Positions 1,723 through 30,636 of a stretch of DNA of 64,000 nucleotides are shown one piece after another; the stretch's first letter is position 1, and each line of letters begins with the position of its first letter. This DNA is from Mytilus edulis (taxonomy: Eukaryota). A program made the translations under genes and the position numbers. The stretch lies in the NCBI RefSeq assembly GCF_963676685.1, contig NC_092351.1, positions 37,944,001 to 38,008,000 on the forward strand, read 5' to 3'. The notes below the pieces were generated by a model. That model was given only the letters and a program-made list of their open reading frames with translations, made no database searches and was not told where the DNA came from.

Positions 1723-1962
1723 TTTTTCCCAAAATTACAGGGCCCATAAAGGGCATAAAATCAGATACAATTGATTTACATAATTGGTAACAACAACAAT
1801 TATAGAGGCATATACATATATATTTGGAATATAAGCATTGGTCAGAATCAAGCCAAAAACCACATATATATTGTGAATAAATGAAGAATAAAATTACATT
1901 ATATATGTATTTATTCTCAAATTGTTTACTTGACTTAGTGTCAGTTTTCATACCTGATCTCC
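1723..1962 (-). mobile_element. 3' end and UTR of a 5'-truncated LINE, separated from its body (17384-18152) by the Sola3-like insertion
   Basis: Removing 1967-17383 rejoins the minus-strand frame ...KLGCYIGDCFELR|RSGMKTDTKSSK. The piece ends in an atgccc..gggc motif and an A-rich tail against the satellite. Confidence 0.7.
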
Positions 1963-2548
1963 TTAAGAGGCTGTCCATTTGAAAACCAGGCAAGGGATGC
2001 ATAAATGTTGGCACATTAAATTTTCTTGAAATTAGTTTTTTTGCATTAAATGTCCTTGTCATTAGATGTAACAAATGGTGTGTATTTATTATTTGGATGA
2101 AAGTTTGATATAGTCTAAAAATTTGGGATGTTTTAGTACCTGGTTTTACCCTTTATGTCCATTGTAAAAGTGCAATTTTTAAAATTGTTTTTTTTTTGTT
2201 CCACATTTATTTGAAAGGTAAAAATTGTTTAAATAGTAAGATAAATGTGTAATTCATACTATTAAACTAAAAAAATATTGGGATCTACATTATTAGTGCC
2301 TATTTCTTTGTTTGAAATATATCATAAAACTAGTATCTGGATTACCTCCCTTTGAATACCAGTGGGAATATTTTCAATGAATATGTTATTTTGTCAATAA
2401 AATATTACAATTAATATTCTATCAATGATAATAAATTACAATATTGGGGAAAACACACAAAGACTGTGATAAAACTCTTTTTATTGAAAAAATAAATTAA
2501 AAAAATATATTTACTGCGGATTCATTTACTGCATTTGTATACAAGAAA

Positions 2549-5500
2549 ATGGAGGGAATAAATGACTCCTGCAGTTTCAGCAGGTTAGGAGATTGTTCTG
2601 GCCATATCATCCATTTTCTTGATTGCCAGAAAGATGTTGTTGCCCACCTTAGATATCTAAAAGTGTGTACTACAGGTTCAAATGTAAATGAGCAGGATCT
2701 GATACTGTATCGCGCCGGATTGTTTGATGTTGATGCAGCCTGCAGGCAATTACTACTGATTTGCCAAGCCCATAGAGATTCTCTTGGGACTTACTGGAAA
2801 ACAAACAGTTCGAAATGTGCCTATCCAGTCCATTCATCAAAGTGTAAAGGAGATAGAGCCATTGACTTTAAAACTTCAAAAGAACTATTTTTCTTGTATC
2901 AATCCTTGATACCTGTTGGAAGTGGTAAGTTACATGTAATTCAGGTTGTGCCCTTTCCCTAATATGTGTCTATTGCCCAAAGCCTACCAAGCTTACAGAA
3001 CAGGTACATGTACACATGCAGTATATAAATGTCAGACTCATTTCGACACCCAATTTATATGTCATTATATAAAACAAGCATCCAAATCAACATCTGAGTT
3101 TTGGCTCCTCAAATCAACATCCATTTTTGTGGAAATGCTGCAATGACATTTTGCATCGAATGACTTTATTTATGGCTTTTTTGTGTCTTTCAAAATATAA
3201 ATAAAATACAGAAATAATTGCAGGATAAAGACAATAATTGTCTAGTGTTTTTACAGAATATCTGCTGTATTTGTACCCGGCTCGAAACAGGTGTAATAGC
3301 TCGCTAAAAGCTCGCATACACCTATTTTCCTAGCCTTGTACAAATACAGCTGATTTTTAAAGACACTTAACAGTTATAGTCTATATCTATAATACTAAAA
3401 TTACGAAGTCCAATTTTTCAGCCGTCATCACGTAAAAACGACGAATCAAAGAATTCAACTTTATATATCACTAATATAGTACAAAGGTGTAGATTGAAAA
3501 TTACACCACTCCAGGCCCTTTTGTTTTCCACGTAATTAATATTGCCAATAATTAAGAAGTTCCGGGTCAAGTCCGATACCGATACCAATAGTATATTCAC
3601 CTGTTACCTATTACCTAATCTGTACGTTCCGCATCTGACAGGCGCACCACCAAACGGTGTATTCAGGGTTAATACCTATTGTAGTATTTTAATCAGTAAG
3701 ACTTTCTAAGATAACAAGACTAAAAATGAGGAACAGTTTTCAACTTGTTAGTGGGCATATACATGACGTAAAACAGCGAATCAAAGAATTCATCTTTAGT
3801 AAGTTAAAACTAATATAGGACAATGTTGTTGATTAAAAATACTCCATTCCAGGACCTTTTGTTTTCCAAATAATTAATATTACCAATAATTTATAAGTTC
3901 CAGTTCGACGGGTTCAAACAGAAAGATTTGAAAGCAGAGAAAAACTGTGTATCTTATAATCGGCATGACTTTATCAGATGACCATACTAATACTTAAACA
4001 AGGCTTGCGCATAGTTATATACCTTAATTCAGTCACGGACCCGCGATATCACGGGTGTGTTCTAGTATTAATATATATATGCAGTTAGGGAGCTACCATT
4101 TGATTTTTAAAGGGGGTTATGAAAATATTGTCCTGCATTTTTACAAGTTTATCTTATTTTTGTTGGCCCAGTTGCTCAGTCATCGTGCCTATTTTTTACT
4201 CCAAACTCCTGTCCTGTAATTTTTTTACCCAGAATTTCAATCCTACATGTACCTATAAATGTTTTTGTGGCAAGTGTGCAAAGGACAAAATCGCACACAA
4301 TACATAGAACATATACAAGTTATCAATGAATAGGGCCTTTATTCCTGTTCTCCATCTTGACATTCACCCGACGGTCTTCAACATTGAAAGAATAATTTTA
4401 CCCTACAAGATGGCCACTAGCATGACTAGGGTCCGCTGAAACAGTACTATTGATAAACATAACCATGTTCAGGTGCTTGCTCTCCCCCCACTGTGGCGTG
4501 CCTACTTGGATGATATGTGTGTACGGCATTTTTCAAGTCAAAAGCACCGGGGATACAAGAAAAAATGAAGTGATTTTAAAAGAAATTACCCCATAAACAA
4601 GCTTTGAAGCTACAAATGTTAAAAGCACTCAATGAATTTCAAAACTTGTAATTACGGGCAGGTTTGCCGATGCCAAATAAAATAATGTGTGTGTTTCCTA
4701 TTACATTGTACATGTACATCTTTGAAAAAAAGAGTAGGTACGTACATTTTGTACATGTATAATATAATAATACTTTATTTTCCGAAAGCAATACAACTTA
4801 TGTAGTTAGTGAGTCTAGGAGGGAAATCCTTACTTTTAAAAACAGTGCTAATGAAAAATGGCAAAACAAACTTTAAGGTACATGTACATGTAGGCTATTT
4901 TTAAGCTTAAATATAGGGAAGTACATTGTAGAGAACACATATATTTTTTATTTGACCTTTCACATACATTGTATTAGTCAATTACAGTCATATATTTCCC
5001 AACAAAAGACCAATACATGTACATGTACATATATAAAACGAAACAAAAATGATAGAAGGCACTTAGCACATTGAAATATAATATATCATTATCTATGATG
5101 AGTTTATTATATGTAAAAAATTAGAGCAGTTTTAAAATGTACGAAATGACACCAAAAAAAATGATGACTAGGCCAATATTTTGAAGAAATAAAAAAAATA
5201 TTAATAGCCATAGGAGGTCAAATTAATCAAAGAAAAAATGCACAAGTTGCAGATAAATGAACTCAATTTTTTTGTCTGTTTATGATTATTCCATATTCTA
5301 ATTACATGAATATCTTGACTGACTTGAAATTTCCCATCTGTCAGACCTGTTTTCTTCCCCTTTATTACATGTAAGTAAAATTCCGAATATTTTAATCTGG
5401 ATTTTACCAGGGCGTTTTTTTTTTAAATTTTATTTACATCCGATATAAATTTTTCCTTTGTTTATATTGGCCTTGTAAAATTTGTTTATCTTTTTTTTAA

Positions 5501-11500: not shown

Positions 11501-14500
11501 ACTGCTCCAATGAAGATACATGCAAAACGGTTTGGAAATGAAGGTAACAATATTACAACTGCAGAAGAGTTGAAAAGAGCCCTTGAAAGTTATAGTGGTA
11601 TCATGAACACACATGTGTATGTTGCTGAAGTTGATTTTAGTGCACAGACTATGAAAAAATGTTCCATACCAAACATAAATATGTACAACAATTTCAGCTT
11701 TGAGATTGGAGGTCTTAGAATGTGGCAAGCTTATGATGTTGGCATAGGTGTCTTCATTTCATCTAGGGATTTGAAGAAGATGTCAAATGGAAAACAAGAT
11801 GAAACAAATCTTAAGGTGAGTAGAAATTTAAAACAAGCCAAGTGTATAGTATTATTTTAGGTTTAGACATGCAGGAAAAGCCCTTTTAATCAATAAACAT
11901 TCTGACAAAGTGTGTTTTTCTAACCAAACTAATCCTTTGACAAATAAAAATGTACCAAGTTCAAATGTAAATAACTTTTTTTTAATATCAAATCTATACA
12001 ATTGGCAAGGTTGATGGTAAATTGAAAGGCCCAAGTAAAAAATTGTATAACAACAAAATATAGTTATAATTTTTTGCCCTAGGTCTTCTCCTTTTCTAGA
12101 AACATGTTCAAGTTTAACATGGTATTACACTGTCATGCCTGTTATTTTTTACCCTTGAAATAAATTCACAAAAAAATTTGAATTTTAAAGAAAAAAAACC
12201 TGATCCTAATTTTAGAGTGGATGTAAAAGGAAGCACAATTTTTTTTTCCTTTTTGTCAAAGAACACTAATGAATTCATATTGAATAAGAAGTGTACAATG
12301 TTATAACTTTAAAATTACTACAACTTGTTTGTATTATTAATATTTTTGCTTGACTATATTGTAGATACTGGAAATGCCAAAAGTTACCAGAATAGGAAAG
12401 AGTAAAATAAGACCAAGAAAGAGCCTTAAGAGGAAGCACAGTGAAACAAATAATGAAAAGGTTTTCATTTTTTTTCTTATTTTTATGATACAATATGAAT
12501 AAATGAATAAGAAGATGTGGTATGAATGCCAATGAGACAACTCTCCATTTAATACACAATGTAGGTAAAGTAAGCTAGGATTTTTATCAAATCAGCTGTA
12601 AAGGACCCCAAAATGGCCAGTAAAAATCTTTTTCAAGCCAGGAAAACAACAACCTTATTATAACGTATACAAAATAAAAATGAACACACGAAAACAACAG
12701 ACTGAATTAGAAAAGGTTTTTACAAAATGCAGCAAGTTTGTATGTTTTAAGTTCATCTCCCTTTTGGACTCCTCAAATGTACATTTTACATGAATGTTGA
12801 ACTAAGTAATAATATATAAGCTTTAAAAGTCCAAAGTCTGCTCAAAGATCCTTTAACTTACTAAGGTAAATTTTACATGTTTAAAACTGAGTTAAATGTA
12901 AAATTTACTTTCTTAACTGTTATCACCTATATCAATTTTAGATAACAATATTGGAAATATGTGTTTATGATTAGTATATTTTTACAGGAAAGAAATGAAA
13001 CAGGAGATGTTGAAGACAATATAGAGGAAATAAATGAGGAGAACACAGAGGAAAATGCTGCTAGTCATGAACAGATGAATGAGGTAACAGATACATATAG
13101 ATTCTTACACTAAAACAAGTGTACTATGATAATTCTTCACTCGAGACAGTTAAATTTTATTATTTAAAGCGCAAGGCTTGCCGAGCCCTTTAAATAATAA
13201 AATTTAACTGGTGAGAGTGGAGAAATATCGTTATACAGGAGTTATAGTGTCGGAATCTGTTTCTCTAATGCTTTTTATCGTTCTTTTTCAAAGATTTTCA
13301 GAAAATTGTGTTCTTTATATGCGATGTCATCAGGCAAGGTCGCCTTTTTTCATGACGTCACAATAGGAAAATGGAGAAGAAAACAAAACATTTTGACGTC
13401 ATAATCAAATTTCGACTAATCATTTGCCGTGAACAGATTTTTCACTAGTGAGGAGAAATATTTTTCTCACACCGGTCAGGAAATGTGAAAATAGCACAAA
13501 AATTAGAGAAATACAATGTATATTCTTTTGTGGTTAACATCACTATCCTTTCATCTTGCAAAAGAAATTAAGGATGGACCAATCTATCTAGACTTTGACA
13601 ATATTGTTCATAGATATAAGAAGATGTGATGTGAGTGTCAATGAGACAACTCTCCATCCAAATAACAATTTAAAAAAGTAAACCATTATAGGTCAATGTA
13701 CAGCCTTCAACACAAAGCTTTGGCCCAAACCGAACAACAAGTTATAAAGGGCCCCAAAATTACTAGTGTAAAACCATTCAAACAGGAAAACCAAAGGTCT
13801 AATGTTTGTTTAGGTTTTATTAGTGTCCTGTGTTGTTAGTGTCTTTATACCCCCAAATAAACAAGTTTTCAGGGATATATATAGGAATCACCCTGTCGTC
13901 CCTCCATCTGTCTGTCCATCACATCTCATAAGTGCAACTCTTCCTTAGTATTGATGTAACTTCAAACAGTTGTAGTACACAACCTAAGGATGTGGACAAA
14001 GGAAAATATTTAAGGATGGAACTATTTTAAGGGAGATAATTGACTTTACTTAGTTAAATATACATCTAGCAATAAATGGCAACAAGTCTTGTTAGCGCAA
14101 TTACTCCTAAAAAGAATAAAATTGATGAAACTTTACCCAGTTGTACACAACCTGAAGATGTGCATGAAGGAGGATATTTCTGGTCTGATTTTTTTCAGGG
14201 GAGATAATTGAAATTACTTAAGTTTAAATACCCACAAATTCGTTCAAAGTATACATGTATGCATGATAGAGTGATTCAATTCTGCTGTTTTTTCACTTCT
14301 TTTATACAAATGTATTTTTTTTTCTTTTGCAGACTGATGACTATACTTGTGGTGAATGTGGTCTTACATTTGTTAGTCTACATGAATATAACATTCACCA
14401 GGACATTGGAAATCATAAGATCAGGCATGCTGATCGAGTAAAAACTTTTTGGAGTAGTAAATGCACTAACATAAAAGAGTCAATGACAAGTGTTTTTTCA

Positions 14501-18152: not shown

Positions 18153-18435
18153 TTCCTATAGAGAACGTTCTATACTATAGTAGATATGTAATATTCAGAC
18201 AACAAGGGATCCTGTAGAACGTCCTTTAGTGTATACATGATAAACAAACAATATAAGGGATCCTATAGAACGTTCTGTAGTAGATATATAAGGTTCAGAC
18301 AACAGGGGATCATGTAGAACAACCAGGGAATCCTGTAGAACGCCCTAACCATGCTAACAGTAGCTTTATTGTAAACCAGTAACAATGGTTCCTATAGAAC
18401 GTACAGCTATAGTAGAATGGTCAGACAACAGGGGT
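18153..18435. repeat. Distal, more degenerate part of the same ~120-bp satellite array
   Basis: GGGATCCTGTAGAACG and CAGACAACAGGGG motifs in the same orientation as 1-1722. Confidence 0.85.
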
Positions 18436-21386: not shown

Positions 21387-23863
21387 TATCCACCTATTGC
21401 TAAGTTAATGAACATTCTATTGAAAAATAGTTCAGAACCTTAAAAATTGACTCGTTTTCCATGATCTGGCATCAAGATTTGTTTTGCAATCAGACTATTA
21501 CAAGTTACTATTTCAATTTGAAACCTAAATGTGAAAAATATATTCATTTAGGTCACGGAAGACGCACCAATAAGTCGTTTAGTATATTATTATAGAGTTT
21601 GGTTTAGTTTCTAGAACATTATTAACTTTAATAAATGTATTAATACAGATTCCGGATTTACAGTTGTATGTATTATTAGCTAATTTGAAGCATGCATGTT
21701 TAACTTCGCCACATTCTTATTTGCTCCCCCCGGCACACATTGTGACAGGGGAATATTGATATGTTCACTTTGGTCTTCGTCTTGCCGGCAGTTAAACTAG
21801 CGCTTAAGTCAGGCGTACATTTTGCTGTGCGGGGTGTACAAGTTTACAGCCACGTCCGGTTATATTGTATATAACTTCAATTTAATCTCTCTTGTACAGA
21901 GAGTGTCACGTTCTCTGCACGTTAAAAACATGAAACTCGTCGAGGGGTTCGTAGGATAACTATTCTATATATCCTCATTTTTCAGTGGCAGTTAAAATTT
22001 CTCCTATCTTCATTTCGGACAACCTATACTACAAGACCTACCTATTGTATATATTGTTAATTTGTCCTGGAAGTATTTGCCACTTGACGTTTAGCAACCA
22101 ATAATAAATCAATCTTATATGTTTCTATTCTGAAACCGGAATATCGGTAGGTTCCGTTAGTTCATGTCCCTCGTATTCGTTTTTTCATTTATAAATTTGA
22201 AATATATTATGCCGTTTATTTCATCGTATGAGTTATTTCGGGCCTTTTACAGTTGACTTAATATGAATATTGAAGCAACCAACAATCAATCATTATATTT
22301 AGATATATGTAGTAAATCCAATGGTGACAGGTAGTAAAAGATAACGGATCCTTCAGAGTAAAGGAAGTTTCATGAAAGACACAAATGTATTTTGTATAAG
22401 AAACGTCGCACGCTACTGGTGTTACTTTGGTAAAATCACGGACAAGACACATTCATCTTATTAATTTTTAAACATAAAAATTGATATTATAAAGTGTTGT
22501 ATATCATTTTAAAGCTTTTAAACTCTTCTTTCAGATTATTGCAATTTTGTATATGTAACAGACCATTTTCATTAATTAAAACTCAATAAAATAAAACCTT
22601 TATTTTGCAATATGATTTCCTTGTCCCGCGTTACACTTTTAGTTTTGTGAAATTCTGAATACCGTAAAAAACATATAAATTTTATTACCAAACGATATAA
22701 AAGTTTGTCTAGAACAAGCAATTCATAATTGGGCGATGACGTAATGTCGATTTTTTTCTCTCGAAAAGACGGAAATATAAAAAAAAAGGGATCAAGATGA
22801 TACAAATTATTTGTCCCATGCACGAAAGGTTGCCGTAATTTTTGTTAAATTGTCTCAAAAAAGGAAATTTCAAAGTAATCCCCATGTCGAAAATAAATAA
22901 TTCTTATACTTGTATTTTGTAGAAAGATCACACTTTCGCCTCATGCAATAATCAGGATTTTTTAAAATAAATTCTTATTATTCGAGTTGAATAGCAATGT
23001 CCGACATTTTGTCCCCTTCAAACTAAATTAAACGTATGGTTACGTTTTCTGTTTTTTTTTCATGATGTTTATTTAATACAGTGCCATTCGCTACATAAAA
23101 CAAATTATAATGGATAAAAGTACAAAAAATTAGCTCTATTTTGATAATAAATTCCCATAAATTAAATATAATATACGAGATATCAGATAAAACTAAAATG
23201 TCCGATACAATGTCCCCACATACGATTTTGACGTTATTTTATAAAAATATACTTCTAACGTTCCGTCTAATTGTCATTATTGCGGTTTTCACAGACGATT
23301 TGGAATACGGCTATTTTATTTTGTTGCTTAATAAGAAAACTTTAAAATTAATTTTTTATGTGGAAGCTCTACCGATTCATAAAGAAGGGGTTGGGAGAGA
23401 TTTTCTCGCGGAACTGAAGTGTTTTCCGGACTATAATAGTCGGATCCGCTATAATACAAATTAATAGAAAAAAAACAGCAATAATAATTGTTCCCGTTAA
23501 TTCCCTTGCATATATTTGTACAGAACTAAGATGCTAGATATGCAGTAGTCCTTTCGCCTTTATTTGACATTCTGGAGTGCAAAGATGAGTGCATTTGCAG
23601 TGCATAGTATACCCATAAAAAAAGTAATCGATTGCCTTTATAATTAAAATGTATATAAAACAAATGGTTTCAATTCAAGTTACTTTTTTATTTTTAATTT
23701 GCTAATAAAACTAAAGCTTAACATCTTTTATCTAAGAAAAAACAATTAATCCTTTCTTAGGGAAAAAAAATCAATCCTTTAAAATTTATTGTAAAAAGCC
23801 ATCTGAACAACATGCATTCCAACGTTTTTATTTTGGCTTACGTCTTTGAGTGTGTAACGTTAG

Positions 23864-26367
23864 TTAACACATGACATCTAGGCAAAATTCCTTTGATCTT
23901 ACTGTGGTATAATCTGGATAATGCACGGGTCAGGTGTGCATTAACTACTTCAATAATTGCACAGGTCACGTGAACTTCACGTCCTGGCCAGATGTTTATT
24001 GTACAGTACTTTGCGTTTGTTGATTCCATTGCTACTACAGATATTTGTTTTTCTCCATTTTGTAAGAAATATCAAGTGGATACATGTGTCTATACTCGGA
24101 CATAAAAATCAGTCAATTGGTAAAACATCAGAATAGAAAACATACAAAACAAATGTAGTAGCATTACAATCAACACAATACAAGTCTAAATAAGATAAAG
24201 AACACACAGGTTGATTTAATACTAAAATTATTTTTCCATCAATATAAAAAAAATTGTCATTAAAAAAAAATGAAAATAAAGTATCATCGACATCTTCCTA
24301 TTATAGTCTTGATATGTAAGATATCAGTGTCACAACATGACACAATGAAAACTAAAAAAAAAACCCCGCTTTTTCATACATTTCTATGTACGGCTTAAAA
24401 ACAACTTAAAATAACAATTCAGTGTTAAAAATTGAAAACAAAATCTGTGAGGTTCACATCTTCGTTACAAAATTGAGCACGCAGTTTTGAAAAGAGCTGT
24501 TACTTGGCAATCCCCGATATTTTCCTTCTGGTTTTGAAACATTAAATGCATTTTCTGTATTTTCAATATTAAATTGCTCAGAAAGGATTGCACGAGTATC
24601 GGTTAATGGTTTGGGATTCTCAAGTTTTATCTGCTTATTAGATGGATTCAAAATGTTAGAGCATATTGTCTTCATGAGTGACCCTAATCTATTAGCACCC
24701 AGTATGTGGTCAAACTTAACAGAACCATCATATAAAACAGGTCTACGATAAAAAGGACTGCTAACCGATTTATCAATTTCGTATATTGCATTCATATACA
24801 TCTGATACGATTTTAGGGTCTGACAATCCTTCTCTAAATATTGTCTGACAGATTTTGGTGCAATATAGCGATGGTGTAGCCCTCCATTATAGGTTTTATT
24901 ATCCTTACCCCGGCATTCAATATAGTTTCCGTTATCATCTTCTCCTAATTGTATTTGAGAAATTTGCAGATTACGGTGTTCGTCACGACCACGTAGACCA
25001 AAATATTTACAGTTGTAGAAAAAAACAGTATGCAATAAACTTTCGGATGAATGATTACCAAACACAGACTTGTCCCACAATATTTCTTCCTGTTCAACTG
25101 AAATTGGATCTGCTTGTTTAACATTTATACCATGCCCATCTGATGTTAATTTCTTCATCTGTGCATCAAGTATTTGTCTAAACCTCAGAAAGTTAAGATT
25201 AGAAACACCGTGTGACCGCATTCCTCTTAGAAGTCCAGTTACAAGAAGATAAAGTGTTTTCGCTGGATATTTCTCTCCATTCTTTTTCCGAACTTCTACT
25301 ACAAATTTTCCTAAAATGCTGTTAATATCTTGAACAGACAAATCCTTCAGGTTTGGTATAATTAAACCACTACCAATTTTAGAATTCTTCCAGTCTTCAT
25401 AGACATTAACTGCCCATTGTGTGGCTTTCTTTGTGTTTTTGTTCTCAGCATCTTCAATAAGTGTATCAATTTCATTGTCTGTCATTTCTGCAAACCTTGA
25501 TTCGACTCCTTGTTCCTGATCTTTAGGTTCTTCATCCTAAAATAAGATAATATCACATAATTCAACACATGGCAGAGGCAAAATCCAGCAGTGGCAAATA
25601 TTTCATGAATGTTCCGGATGAGAACAATTAAACGATAAAACTAGTCGGAAGTTTCCGTAAATGATTATATCAAGGGTCTAAATAGCAGATCCAGAACTTT
25701 TTATTTAAGGGGGAGGGCTGACTGACCTAAAAGGAGGGGGCGCGCGTCATGCTTCAGTGATTCCCTATATAATCAACCATTTTTTTTCCACAAAAGAGGG
25801 ACCCGGGACTCCATCCCTTGGATCCGTCTATGGGTCCACACCTCAAATCATGCCATAATGGGTCTGCGCGTGGCAGATAATTCTAAAAAAAAAGACGTAC
25901 CTTGACATTTTGGATCTTTCCGTTTTCCGAAGGAACTTGCAACCATAGATCTAAGTCTAGTCCTAGGTCAAATGAAACAGCTGAGGTGTCGATTAAATCT
26001 CCAGATGCATTTTCATCCATCACATTACTAGGAAACTCTCCAAAAAAGTCCTCTATATTTACATTTCTCAGTTCCATTTCATCCTCCAATGTTTCTAATA
26101 CTTGTGATAAGATCATATCATCCTCCGATAATTCATGATGAAATCCACCCATTTCAACGTCTTGTTGGGCGGATGTGATTTATGCGGGAAAATTGTTGAC
26201 GTCATGTGTTAAAACAGTTATTGGCCAATCAAATCGGTATATGTTTTAATTTGCACAGCACGAGATGACCCATTAACCCGAACTCCTTCGTCGTTCGGGT
26301 TAAACAGGGTCACTCGAGCTGTGCAAATTAAATCCCATATACCGACTTGCTTGGTCAATAACTATAA
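23864..26367 (-). mobile_element. Crypton-like tyrosine-recombinase DNA transposon, copy 1
   Basis: Boundaries are defined by near identity with 28205-30098. No TSD. Terminal hairpin at 26215-26365 and 12-bp inverted repeat TTAACACATGAC (23864) / GTCATGTGTTAA (26201). Confidence 0.82.
24454..26152 (-). CDS. Crypton-type tyrosine recombinase (DUF3504/QRICH1/ZMYM-like), 2 exons, ~444 aa; open frame but C-terminal catalytic segment deleted
   Basis: Exons 26152-25901 and 25536-24454 (GT-AG, phase 0). Motifs: NTKKATQWAVNVYEDW, LGKFVVEVRKKNGEKYP and YFGLRGRDEHRNL. Lacks the ATRL..TGHRS..VRTY segment present in copy 2. Confidence 0.8.
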
Positions 26368-28204
26368 TGTGACACCAGTATCGTGCGACGTTTCATAAAA
26401 AAGACCATTCAAATATCTACTTGAGAGTCGGACTGCCTGAGTTCCTAGATTGAGGCTGTGACCCGAAGTACTATTTTGACATTCAAAATATGTTAAACTA
26501 CTAAGGAAACATATCTGCAAAACTTCACAGAACAAATGGGTATATTTATCCCTGATAGAAGATTGCTCAAATTTGGACTAAACCATTCGATTTACATTTA
26601 CTGGTCTGAATATTCAGGTATGGCAGATGTGTTGAGTGTGGGTAGTGGGGGAGGGGAGGGGTTTGGAGGATGCATAAAAAAAAAACGTTTAACAAATTTC
26701 CAGGCAGAAAATATGAGTACTAATCTTTCAATCTTTGAAAGTTTGCACATTTCTCTTCATGTTTGCTACATGTATGCTCAATGCTCCACCGCCTACGATA
26801 AATTCTAACCCCCCTTTTATCTATAACTTTGATTGCTCCTTGATATTTCCTTCCTTTCGATTACCTTTTATTTTTACCATTCTTAATTTTTTATGACCCA
26901 AGAAGTGTCATTGATGATTAATGTCCAACAGCAAGTATTACATGCATAACATACTAGTAGTAAAGTGATATGAAAACGAACATATGAATTCACAAGAACG
27001 AATAAATAACTATATATATATATATATAGATACTTATTTCTAATTCTTTAACTTGACAGGAGATTTAATCAACGTTGTCCCGCCCTCGGAGCATGCTACC
27101 ACAAGATTTGACTAAGTACACCAATATTGATTGAAAATAAAGTAATTTGAATATTATTCTACTTTCATAATACACACATTGAAAATACTTTCATGATAAA
27201 ATTTAAATGAAAATGAAAATGAAAGTGTGTATATCATTTAACCAGAGCACCCATTGATCTTTATTTAAATTTCACTGACTGTTTATTTTATTGATATATA
27301 AAGACATTTTATCAACAAAATCTGCAGTGTCAGCAATTTAAGTGTTATACATGATAAAAAGAACCGAAACTAGTGTATATCTGTACATAATAATGTATAA
27401 TTGATCGGGTTTTAAAAATAAATAATCTACGTGTCAAAGATTATTAAGCAACACGGATGTAAAATTGAAGAGAACGAAAGGAAAGTTAAAAGATGGGAAA
27501 GGTATTTATAATCTTTATTATAAGGCTTTAATCGGTGAAGTAATGTTGTTTATCGACTTTACTTTGTATTTTGTAGTAAATGTCCTCAGTTAATATCAAG
27601 TCACAAAGCAAATCATAATTAAAGTTAGAGGTTTGTGTACATTGAACACTCGCAAATATTAAAGATATCCAGTATTATATACTAGACATTGGTAGCGAAA
27701 CAAGACAAAGGGTATAGGTCAAAGAAACCACAATAAAACTAGTAGAAAGGATTTCTAGAGGGTAATCTATGAATGGAATATATTAGTAATAAGCTAGCGT
27801 TTCCATGCCAGTACATGTCAAACTCTGAATCGTGTTAAGTATATATTTAATACAGATAATACTTAAGAACTGCAGACGATACATAATCCTTGAATGGTTT
27901 TAGGGTTCATCTGCACATACAACAAGCACATGTAGGTCGGCTACATGTCACGAAAAAATAATATGCGCTTCTCTGTACTATATTGATACGATGGAAATGT
28001 ATTTCAAGAGACCTGTAGCGAACACACTCGTCAGATTCTTAAGCATCTATAATTCCGAGCATTATTTTTTTTTTATCGAAGATGTCCCTCGAATGCGTTA
28101 ATGACCAACTAATCAATAAATATATAGAGGTCGTGAAATATGGTGTTTCTAATATCCAGGAATTCTGCATTGCTATTAACAAACATTATTCAAAATGCCA
28201 GACT

Positions 28205-30098
28205 TTAACACATGACAGAGGCAAAATTCCTTTGATCTTACTGTGGTATAATCTGGATAATGCACGGGTCAGGTGTGCATTAACTACTTCAATAATTGCA
28301 CAGGTCACGTGAACTTCACGTCCTTGACAGATGTTTATTGTACAGTACTTTGCGTTTGTTGATTCCATTGCTACTACAAATATTTGTTTTTCTCCATTTT
28401 GTAAGAAATATCAAGTGGATACATGTATCTATACTCGGACATAAAAATCAGTCACTTGATAAAACATCAGAATAGAAAACATACAAAACAAATGTAGTAG
28501 TATTACAATCAACACAATACAAGTCTAAATAAGATAAAAAAAAAACACAGGTTAATTTAATACTAAAATTATTTTTCCGTCAATATAAAAAAAATTGTCA
28601 TTAAAAAAAATGAAAATAAAGTATCATCGACATCTTCCTATTATAGTCTTGATATGTAAGTTATCAGTGTCACAACCTGACACAGTGAAAACTAAAAAAA
28701 AACCCGCTTTTTCATACATTTCTATGTACGGCTTAAAAACAACTTAAATAACAATTCAGTGTTAAAAATTGAAAACAAAATCTGTGAGGTTCACATCTTC
28801 GTTACAAAATTGAACACGCAGTTTTGAAAAGAGCTGTTACTTGGCAATCCCCGATATTTTCCTTCTGGTTTTGAAACATTAAATGCATTTTCTGTATTTT
28901 CAATGTTAACTTGCTCAGGAAGGATTGCACGAGTATTTGTTAATGGTTTGGGGTCCTCAAGTTTTATTTGCTTATTAGATGGATTCAAAATGTTAGAGAC
29001 ATCTTTTAGCATAGAATCTGCAGGTCTTTTGTAGGTACGAACAGCCTTTTCACTCCTGTGACCTGTTCTATCCATTATCATCTGCTCACTGACTCCTGCT
29101 TGGTACAATCTAGTTGCAAGTGTTCTTTTCTTCATAGACATTAACTGCCCATTTTGTGGTTTTCTTTGTGTTTTTGTTCTCAGCATCTTCAATAAGTGTA
29201 TCAATTTCATTGTCTGTCATTTCTGCAAACCTTGATTCGACTCCTTGTTCCTGATCTTTAGGTTCTTCATCCTAAAATAAGATAATATCACATAATTTAA
29301 CACATGGCAGAGGCAAAATCCGGCAGTGGCAAATATTTCATGAATGTTCCGGATGAGAACAATTAAACAATAAAACTAGTCGGAAGTTTCCGCAAATGAA
29401 TGTATCAAGGGTCTAAGTAGCAGATCCAGAACTTTTTATTTAAGGGGGAGGGCTGACTGACCTAAAAGGAGGGGGCGCGGATCATGCTTCAGTGATTCCC
29501 TATATAATTAACCATTTTTTTCACAAAAGAGGGACCCGGGACTCCATCCCTTGGATCCGTCTATGGGTCCACACCTCAAATCATGCAATAATGGGTCTGC
29601 GCGTGGCAGATAATTCTAAAAAAAGACGTACCTTGACATTTTGGATCTTTCCGTTTTCCGAAGGAACTTGCAACCATAGATCTAAGTCTAGTCCTAGGTC
29701 AAATGAAACAGCTGAGGTGTTGATTAAATCTCCAGATGCATTCTCATCCATCACATTACTAGGAAACTCTCCAAAAAAGTCCTCTATATTTACATTTTTC
29801 AGTTCCATTTCATCCTCCAATGTTTCTAATACTTGTGATAAGATCATATCATCCTCCGATAATTCATGATGAAATCCATCCATTTCAACGTCTTGTTGGG
29901 CGGATGTGATTTATGCGGGAAAATTGTTGACGTCATGTGTTAAAACAGTTATTGGCCAATCAAATCGGTATATGTTTTAATTTGCACAGCACGAGATGAC
30001 CCATTAACCCGAACTCCTTCGTCGTTCGGGTTAAACAGGGTCACTCGAGCTGTGCAAATTAAATCCCATATACCGACTTGCTTGGTCAATAACTATAA
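28205..30098 (-). mobile_element. Crypton-like element, copy 2 (internally deleted)
   Basis: Near-identical to copy 1, including the intron, UTRs and hairpin (29946-30096). Inverted repeat at 28205 / 29932-29943. Confidence 0.82.
28791..29883 (-). pseudogene. Tyrosine recombinase pseudogene: core deleted and frameshifted, but the catalytic C-terminal segment is retained
   Basis: Exon 1 spans 29883-29632 and exon 2 starts at 29271. A deletion junction at ~29128/29129 shifts the frame. The downstream frame reads KRTLATRLYQAGVSEQMIMDRTGHRSEKAVRTYKR (H and nucleophile Y of tyrosine recombinases). Confidence 0.82.
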
Positions 30099-30636
30099 CG
30101 TAATCATGGACCCATATAGTTTAAGATGTAAAAATAAAAATTAATAGGTGTCAACATTGTACCTTTCTTTTCAATTCGACAATTCATATAGATAAAATGT
30201 ATTTGCAGTCAAAACCAAAAAAATAAAATAAGGACAAGTTGTATGATTGTCAATGAGACAACTACCTACAGGAATTAAAATGACGAAGATAAAAGCAAAT
30301 TATAGGTCAGCGTACGATATATTTTCAGCCGTCAACAATGAAAAATACATATCGTATAATTACCAATAAAATCTGAGCCTGTGGTGTTACAGTACAACAT
30401 ATGAACAAACTAAAAAATCAGTTTGCAAATGACTAAGCCCAATAGATCGGTATCGAGCAAAAACGAAAACCAAAAAGACTAAACTCAGTATAGACATAAA
30501 TGACCACTATATAAGAGTGCTTGCAGTTATTTAAAGCTGAATTAAAACCAATTACAACTAACAAAAACAAATCTTGTTTTTCGTAATTTCAGATAAGTAA
30601 TTTCAACTCATCAAATCTAAATTTACAAATTTTCAG

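Follow-up and report, generated by a model that had tools for sequence, protein, structure and literature searches.

Within a 64,000-nucleotide stretch of the Mytilus edulis genome (contig NC_092351.1, positions 37,944,001 to 38,008,000; hereafter the window) lie two copies of F1, a repeat whose predicted protein identifies it as a CryptonA-type tyrosine-recombinase (YR) DNA transposon. We find that F1 has a defined terminal architecture: the box that opens the element (A) recurs as its reverse complement (A′) near the right end, where it is followed by a short spacer and a long hairpin with outer arms B and B′, and an internal complement of the element's own joined ends thus stands beside the hairpin. 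The same layout occurs in five families with differing box sequences and, judging from their aligned ends, is a family-level character. This architecture has not been reported for Cryptons, and it may act as a recombination site that is recognised in folded form.

Terminal architecture of the F1 Crypton

F1 is a dispersed repeat of 2.5-2.7 kb with at least 40 coding copies in the 1.37-Gb genome, and its matches genome-wide end exactly at the boundaries of copy 1. Left flanks are unrelated up to the T of TTAAC in 28 independent insertions, and the right terminus reads ...CAATAACTATAAC, its last base being C in 26 of the 28 and T in copy 1. The mobile unit, which opens with TT... and closes with ...AC, carries both palindrome arms at its right end and has no terminal inverted repeats (TIRs). 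A preliminary description of this DNA had set the boundaries at A and B′; the aligned genome-wide copies agree, stopping at A and at B′ plus a 5-nt tail in the 28 insertions, except that its right boundary for copy 1, 26367, was one base short (Table 1).

The boxes and spacer named in that description (A, A′, AAC, B and B′) are all present, and its hairpin of about 150 nt upstream of the recombinase ATG measures 148 nt, with the ATG 49 nt from the A′ box. B and B′ form the outer 13 pairs of the hairpin, one of them G:T. Folded as single-stranded DNA, the hairpin reaches -54.1 kcal/mol, compared to -14.9 +/- 2.7 for shuffled sequences (z = -14.75; 0 of 200 shuffles as good), and the consensus structure is retained in 18 copies. 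The complementarity of A and A′ was matched by none of 5000 interior 25-nt windows in each of the families F1, F48, F39 and S (described below), and the shuffle and window controls rule out chance as the source of the A/A′ pattern. The internal 23-mer A′-AAC-B occurs 341 times in the genome, every time within an F1 right end. Joining the right end of F1 to the left would complete a single long palindrome, imperfect and interrupted by a 3 x 5 nt asymmetric internal loop at the crossover point, AC^TT.

Comparison of filled and empty sites proves the absence of a target-site duplication (TSD), as claimed earlier. Two paralogs of the host repeat that received copy 1 read uninterrupted through the site (...aacgttag/gtgacacc..., the slash marking the insertion point), and Logan contigs from other individuals contain matching joints; copy 1 has no TSD. 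The host repeat itself (23690-23863 plus 26369-26395) has at least 129 candidate copies that are 95-99% identical, and the insertion lies near its end. Copy 2 was said to share the layout of copy 1, and its A, A′, hairpin and ATAAC could all be located. The two copies, which share one orientation and are separated by 1.8 kb, carry different deletions, and a join of the copy 2 type is present in an RNA-library contig (X15, record 17).

Table 1. Positions of Crypton features in the window (s1 and s2, internal and terminal spacers)
Feature	Positions	Strand	Remarks
F1 Crypton copy 1	23864..26368	gene on (-)	2505 bp, defective; ends from 28 insertions and two empty paralogous sites
A box, TTAACACATGAC	23864..23875	(+)	begins at element base 1; identical in 26/30 left ends
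A′ box, GTCATGTGTTAA	26201..26212	(+)	exact reverse complement of A
Internal spacer s1, AAC	26213..26215	(+)	2 nt shorter than terminal spacer
Imperfect 148-nt hairpin	26216..26363	(+)	B 26216-26228, B′ 26351-26363
Terminal spacer s2	26364..26368	(+)	ATAAT in copy 1, ATAAC in other copies; crossover immediately 3′
Recombinase exon 1	25901..26152	(-)	84 aa, acidic; ATG at 26152; open reading frame (ORF), RNA-library contig covers 25887-26153
Recombinase intron	25536..25900	(-)	GTACGT...AG; two very high-copy short repeats inside; read from sequence
Recombinase exon 2	24454..25535	(-)	DUF3504/QRICH1; Pfam match and comparison with the 409-aa exon 2 of L003
F1 copy 2	28205..30099	(-)	same ends as copy 1; middle of gene replaced
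Copy 2 A box	28205-28216		
Copy 2 A′ box	29932-29943		
Copy 2 hairpin	29947-30094		
Copy 2 ATAAC	30095-30099		
S element	13095..13511	(-)	non-coding family S
S element A	13502-13511		
S element A′	13260-13269		
S element hairpin	13099-13258		
S element tail	13095-13098		

The recombinase is the only long ORF in the element. Exons were searched individually, and exon 2 of copy 1 matches DUF3504 at 2e-17 as well as QRICH1 in Pfam; for the spliced protein we used the database entry P0001 (510 aa, 100% identical), which matches DUF3504, QRICH1 and the C-terminal catalytic part of Phage_integrase. The 84 aa of exon 1, a further 17 aa and the 409 aa of exon 2 in the full-length copy L003 add up to 510 aa, the length of P0001. 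The catalytic set R..H-x-x-R..H..Y is intact in full-length copies (in L003, GLRGRDEH, NHSGKRTLATRLY and TGHRS..VRTYKR), and on the strength of these motifs and the DUF3504/QRICH1 match we assign the element to the CryptonA type. Searches of ORFs and Pfam found no reverse transcriptase (RT)/RNase H, methyltransferase or Rep protein in the element, and no HUH (Y1) transposase, with Pfam returning tyrosine-recombinase domains only. Both window copies are defective: copy 1 lacks the catalytic block through an in-frame 174-nt deletion near 24661 that costs 58 aa including the H-R-H-Y residues, and in copy 2 the middle of the gene is replaced. In Logan contigs of three Mytilus species, two intron stretches (25519-25619 and 25721-25821) reach depths of about 1e4 and 1e5-4e5, compared to about 100 over the gene; hundreds of contigs are loose-ended there, and the stretches look like a very abundant short nested repeat.

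Abundant non-autonomous derivatives conserve the two ends only, and the hairpin module is the part most strongly retained. Relative to the gene, Logan contig depth is 30-50x over the right-end module and about 10x over the left end, and in other members the shared part of the right end starts only some 10 nt ahead of A′. Large non-autonomous families consisting of ends only also exist for F48, F46 and F33, and S, F48 and F46 each yield 1,900 to 3,800 candidate matches in the genome. The alternative in which A...A′ delimits a shorter element and the hairpin belongs to a neighbour was rejected, as the hairpin lies inside all copies of all families. Separately, and unrelated to the Crypton, a repeat scan of the window found tandem arrays of an approximately 119 bp repeat at 1-1700 and 18180-18350.

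The layout across Crypton families

The M. edulis genome contains many Crypton lineages, with proteins 29-68% identical to that of F1. We bounded the ends of each family in Table 2 from several copies and oriented them with the A box on the left and the hairpin on the right. The preliminary description had named, as a possible refutation set beforehand, a failure of A/A′ complementarity to be conserved among related families; the complementarity is conserved across these five, in different letters.

Table 2. Terminal layout in five Crypton families
Family	Relation to F1	Left end (A)	Right end (A′-spacer-hairpin-spacer)	Remarks
F1		TTAACACATGAC	GTCATGTGTTAA-AAC-148-nt hairpin-ATAAC	
F46	~46-51% protein identity	TTAACCTATAGC	GCGATTGGTTAA-AAC-hairpin-ATAAC	
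F48	48% protein identity	TTGTAACATAAAT	ATTTATATTACAA-ATTT-~100-nt hairpin-TAGTAC	
F39	39% protein identity	TTAGAACATA	TATGTTCTAA-GTTT-~90-nt hairpin-ATATAC	empty paralog found
S		TTTCTCTAAT	ATTAGAGAAA-C-160-nt hairpin-ATAT	non-coding, thousands of copies

Several properties recur along with the order of the parts. All four coding families start with TT and end with AC, and in each the spacer on the junction side exceeds the internal one by exactly 2 nt (5/3 in F1 and F46, 6/4 in F48 and F39). Folds of the joined right and left ends, computed for four families, continue each hairpin through A:A′ pairing beyond an asymmetric internal loop. Six families of unrelated sequence retain stems 90-250 nt in length, far in excess of a protein footprint.

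The layout also has predictive value. From the bases beside the F46 hairpin we predicted the left end of that family blind; the end then fetched was complementary at 10 of 12 positions, and 26 of 39 copies start exactly there. An earlier left-end candidate for F46 (L073:765, CATAAAACT), which did not fit the layout, proved to be the breakpoint of an insertion in a second copy.

Other lineages yielded partial versions. F47 has a right end with a hairpin and an F1-like AACTATAAC terminus, and its left end was not found. F68 (L070) has GTCATGTATTGA as its A′, and its left end is lost in the sole copy; for the variant A′ boxes of L071 and L072 no matching A was found within 2.8 kb upstream. The F47 hairpin (L036:4226-4373, L042 and L043) also bears an additional outer stem, ACCAAATTAAAAA / TTTTTAATTTGGT, beyond a TTTGA x CAC loop; the arrangement resembles an entire palindrome of the junction type retained within the element. 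F33 (L069:2802-3155; G000:C1:10657800-10662800), at about 33% identity, has a 116-nt palindrome 65 nt inside its right end, with the gene pointing toward the palindrome, and its left end lies beyond the L069 locus. Its 354-nt end module is common to a large non-autonomous family, and there are tandem repeats of about 190 bp near the other side.

A candidate folded recombination site

Insertion sites bear on how the ends are used. The four bases 3′ of F1 insertions read W-T-A-W, resembling the TTAA with which the element begins: T is second in 28 of 28 insertions and A third in 22, and F48 targets behave in the same way. These bases are identical to TTAA in just 2 of the 28, and the identical 4-6-bp terminal direct repeat of the fungal type is accordingly absent. 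At the left junction the bases are of the element type in 27 of the 28 insertions, the single exception differing at one base, and the right junction carries the target version and, apart from one tandem pair, never that of the element. A classical 6-8-bp heteroduplex overlap with random segregation would lead to junction outcomes of about 50:50; the one-sided inheritance seen here favours the exchange of a single strand followed by replication. We also observed an S copy nested in the hairpin of another (L044:419-835; G000:C5:20792300-20793400) at GATA/TTTCTCC, a target that shares 9 nt with the joined ends of S, ATAT/TTTCTCT.

Based on these features, we propose that the structure is the cis-acting recombination site of a CryptonA transposon, recognised in folded form like the attC site of integrons and exchanged through one strand, a reading that we judge to have an even chance of being correct. 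In this model, the recombinase would recognise the site as a single-stranded hairpin or an extruded cruciform, with A:A′ and B:B′ serving as the two binding arms, as the R and L boxes do in attC or the arms of the folded attP(+) in CTXphi. One strand would be cleaved at AC^TT and exchanged with a target in which the four bases that follow are similar to the first four of the element, and replication would resolve the resulting junction. In an integrated copy, pairing of A with A′ on one strand could set both ends side by side on an internal splint, which would offer the element a way out as a single-stranded circle. The preliminary description had suggested such excision or circularisation through a folded single strand, and we likewise infer it from the layout. 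More broadly, animal Cryptons as a group might move through a folded single strand, with the internal complement splinting the ends, a single-stranded circle being excised and the completed hairpin integrating in the manner of attC before replication; we advance this general scheme tentatively, as rather less probable than the site itself. If true, integron and CTXphi recombination would have their first counterpart in a eukaryote, and the internal complementary region of DIRS elements would seem to descend from a Crypton recombination site.

Four lines of evidence favour use of the site in folded form. The 90-250 nt stems stay complementary while their sequences turn over, which a protein footprint cannot require, and the bases next to the crossover are inherited one-sidedly. 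An integrated Crypton equals an integrated integron cassette part for part, and the 2-nt asymmetry at the crossover resembles the unpaired features that define attC (PMC5027507).

The main rival is a conventional duplex mechanism, in which a double-stranded circle would carry a core of B′-spacer-A, the internal A′-spacer-B would be a second copy, inverted and not cleavable, with a role in loading or regulating the recombinase, and the palindrome would be a by-product. Tyrosine recombinases normally act on duplex sites with inverted arms around a spacer (Kojima & Jurka 2011), and the position of the internal site 49 nt upstream of the ATG would suit autoregulation of the promoter, which must lie in the 215 bp between the ATG and the end of the element. 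F1, F46 and F47 have kept the same terminal motifs, TTAAC and CTATAAC, a sequence conservation that points to recognition by protein. This mechanism leaves unexplained why B and B′ remain complementary over 90-250 nt despite sequence turnover and why the 2-nt asymmetry is constant. It also predicts frequent insertion into the internal copy, yet 341 internal copies are intact; A and B′ of F1 are not inverted copies of each other, and the one-sided junction bases are unlike a 6-8-bp heteroduplex overlap. We regard the duplex mechanism as unlikely on balance, while taking it more seriously than any other competitor.

The hairpin could instead serve replication, with the element moving as or via a single-stranded circle, the hairpin providing a complementary-strand origin or primer and the internal complement being a relic shared with an ancestor of DIRS. 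Long hairpins do act as complementary-strand origins in single-stranded DNA replicons, and the hairpin is the module that non-autonomous copies retain most strongly. DIRS elements, whose recombinase is related, use an internal complementary region in replication (PMC13465315). F1 encodes neither an RT nor a Rep protein, and A′ directly adjoins the foot of the hairpin, its pairing reaching exactly to element base 1, which ties it to the crossover and not to priming; the mimicry of the A box by the target is likewise a property of recombination. This explanation appears improbable to us. We give almost no credence to chance, or to a piggyBac-like TTAA element with 8-bp inverted repeats (CACATGAC...GTCATGTG) beside an unrelated palindromic miniature inverted-repeat transposable element. 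The left end does begin with TTAA, which recurs at the end of A′; all 28 insertions nevertheless include the hairpin and end at ATAAC, and five families repeat the layout in other letters, in addition to the shuffle and window controls. The piggyBac-like version in particular is ruled out by the empty sites, which have no TTAA duplication, and by the protein, which is a tyrosine recombinase and not a DDE transposase.

Several observations count against the folded site that we propose. We know of no eukaryotic tyrosine recombinase that uses single-stranded substrates. In F39 all four boxes carry the 7-mer AGAACAT or its complement ATGTTCT, which fits ordinary duplex half-sites equally well and is what the duplex mechanism would lead one to find. 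Within F1, covariation amounts to 1 compensated pair in 57, almost none, there being too little variation; uncompensated changes in A or A′ occur in copies L009/L010, L028 and L002 and probably reflect decay after insertion. The bottom strand folds better in all five families, by 0.4-5.2 kcal/mol, a weak asymmetry to which we give no weight. The layout is unconfirmed in F47, F33, the L035 family and F68, where the ends are incomplete or unbounded. Among the joints listed from 24 Logan runs none connects a right end to a left end, an uninformative result given that rare forms are lost from assembled contigs; nor did these contigs reveal any single-stranded form.

In the genome assembly the joined right-left 23-mer occurs twice, both times in tandem copies. 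An F1 right end abuts an F1-type left end (...ATAAC/TTAACACATG...) only at L019:2540-2542 (G000:C1:6303192-6303214) and at G000:C8:5761570-5761592. The second element at L019 is a 1.3-kb non-autonomous relative, whose inner hairpin has had its right arm converted so that it exactly complements the left one.

Comparison with known recombination systems

To our knowledge, no order of eukaryotic DNA transposons is less well understood than the Cryptons, and we know of no Crypton shown to move in a test system. The description of their ends as featureless has made them hard to annotate and has left their mechanism to analogy. The signature TT-[A] ... [A′]-spacer-hairpin-spacer+2-AC supplies a rule for finding Crypton ends and non-autonomous derivatives, together with a concrete hypothesis of a folded DNA substrate and one-strand exchange, and it links eukaryotic tyrosine-recombinase elements with bacterial folded single-strand recombination and with the internal complementary region of DIRS. 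Experimental material exists, as Crypton-A ranks with the most active groups of DNA transposons in present-day oysters (bioRxiv 10.64898/2026.02.10.705023).

Papers from 2011 to 2026 say that animal Cryptons have no terminal structure. Kojima & Jurka (2011, PMC3212892) described them without terminal repeats and entered 'n.d.' (not detected) in their supplement; a later account gives a short direct repeat as the only terminal feature of Cryptons (PMC8969392), and another states that Cryptons lack conserved structural features (PMC12130899). Full-text literature searched for a Crypton hairpin, circular form or internal complementary region holds no description of the layout, Repbase reports being outside that search. 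F1 resembles published CryptonA elements (Goodwin, Butler & Poulter 2003; PMC3212892) in its sole gene for a DUF3504-type recombinase, whose catalytic set is intact in full-length copies, its lack of RT, TIRs and TSD, its abundant non-autonomous derivatives and a presumed circular intermediate. It differs in that animal Cryptons have been published without any terminal repeats, whereas the families studied here keep a defined architecture at their ends. Of the 4-6-bp direct repeat found at the termini of fungal Cryptons, F1 has just a degenerate match, TTAA versus WTAW.

Of the two analogies drawn in the preliminary description, that with attC fits box for box, and that with DIRS proved looser. 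An integron cassette is ordered [TTRRRY]-gene-[R'' RYYYAAC][L''-stem and loop-L′], and the Crypton is ordered [A]-gene-[A′][B-stem and loop-B′] (PMC5027507, PMC2727003). The R box corresponds to A:A′, the unpaired central spacer to the unequal spacers, the L box to B:B′ and the variable terminal structure to the long stem. Both keep structure without sequence, begin the unit with TT, share a few bases with the target and have junctions that look one-strand-exchanged, and the joined ends of four families fold into the attC arrangement, a resemblance in layout only. In contrast to cassettes, the Crypton resides in a eukaryote, carries its own recombinase, which is of the DUF3504 type and not IntI, and inserts genome-wide and not at attI. 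Its crossover is at the edge of the A box, compared to one base inside the R box, its stems are longer, and we infer its single-stranded use.

DIRS1-type elements share a related recombinase family and an internal stretch that complements the joined ends and sits immediately inward of the right terminal structure (PMC13465315). They encode RT, RNase H and methyltransferase and have inverted repeats at both ends, and their internal complementary region is thought to be active in reverse transcription (PMC13465315). F1 has no RT-type genes and no inverted terminal repeats at both ends, so that among DIRS features only the internal complement has a counterpart; it also differs in geometry, with both repeat arms at one end and the complement abutting the hairpin foot.

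Two bacterial systems offer further likenesses to the Crypton site, one of them a hairpin folded from inverted sites and the other a cleavage site read by DNA. In CTXphi and other XerCD phages, a single strand carries two copies of the site in inverted orientation, about 100 nt from each other, which fold into a hairpin whose centre stays unpaired, the attP(+); one strand is exchanged and replication completes the process. These phages differ from the Crypton in relying on host recombinases, in having a single chromosomal dif target and in having a genome that is naturally single-stranded. In the IS200/IS605 group (IS608), a subterminal hairpin has at its foot a short sequence that pairs with the cleavage site, and DNA and not protein specifies the end; that group uses a HUH transposase, 4-nt guides and hairpins at both ends. 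The element described here belongs to CryptonA, and it resembles attC, CTXphi, DIRS and IS608 only in the logic of its site.

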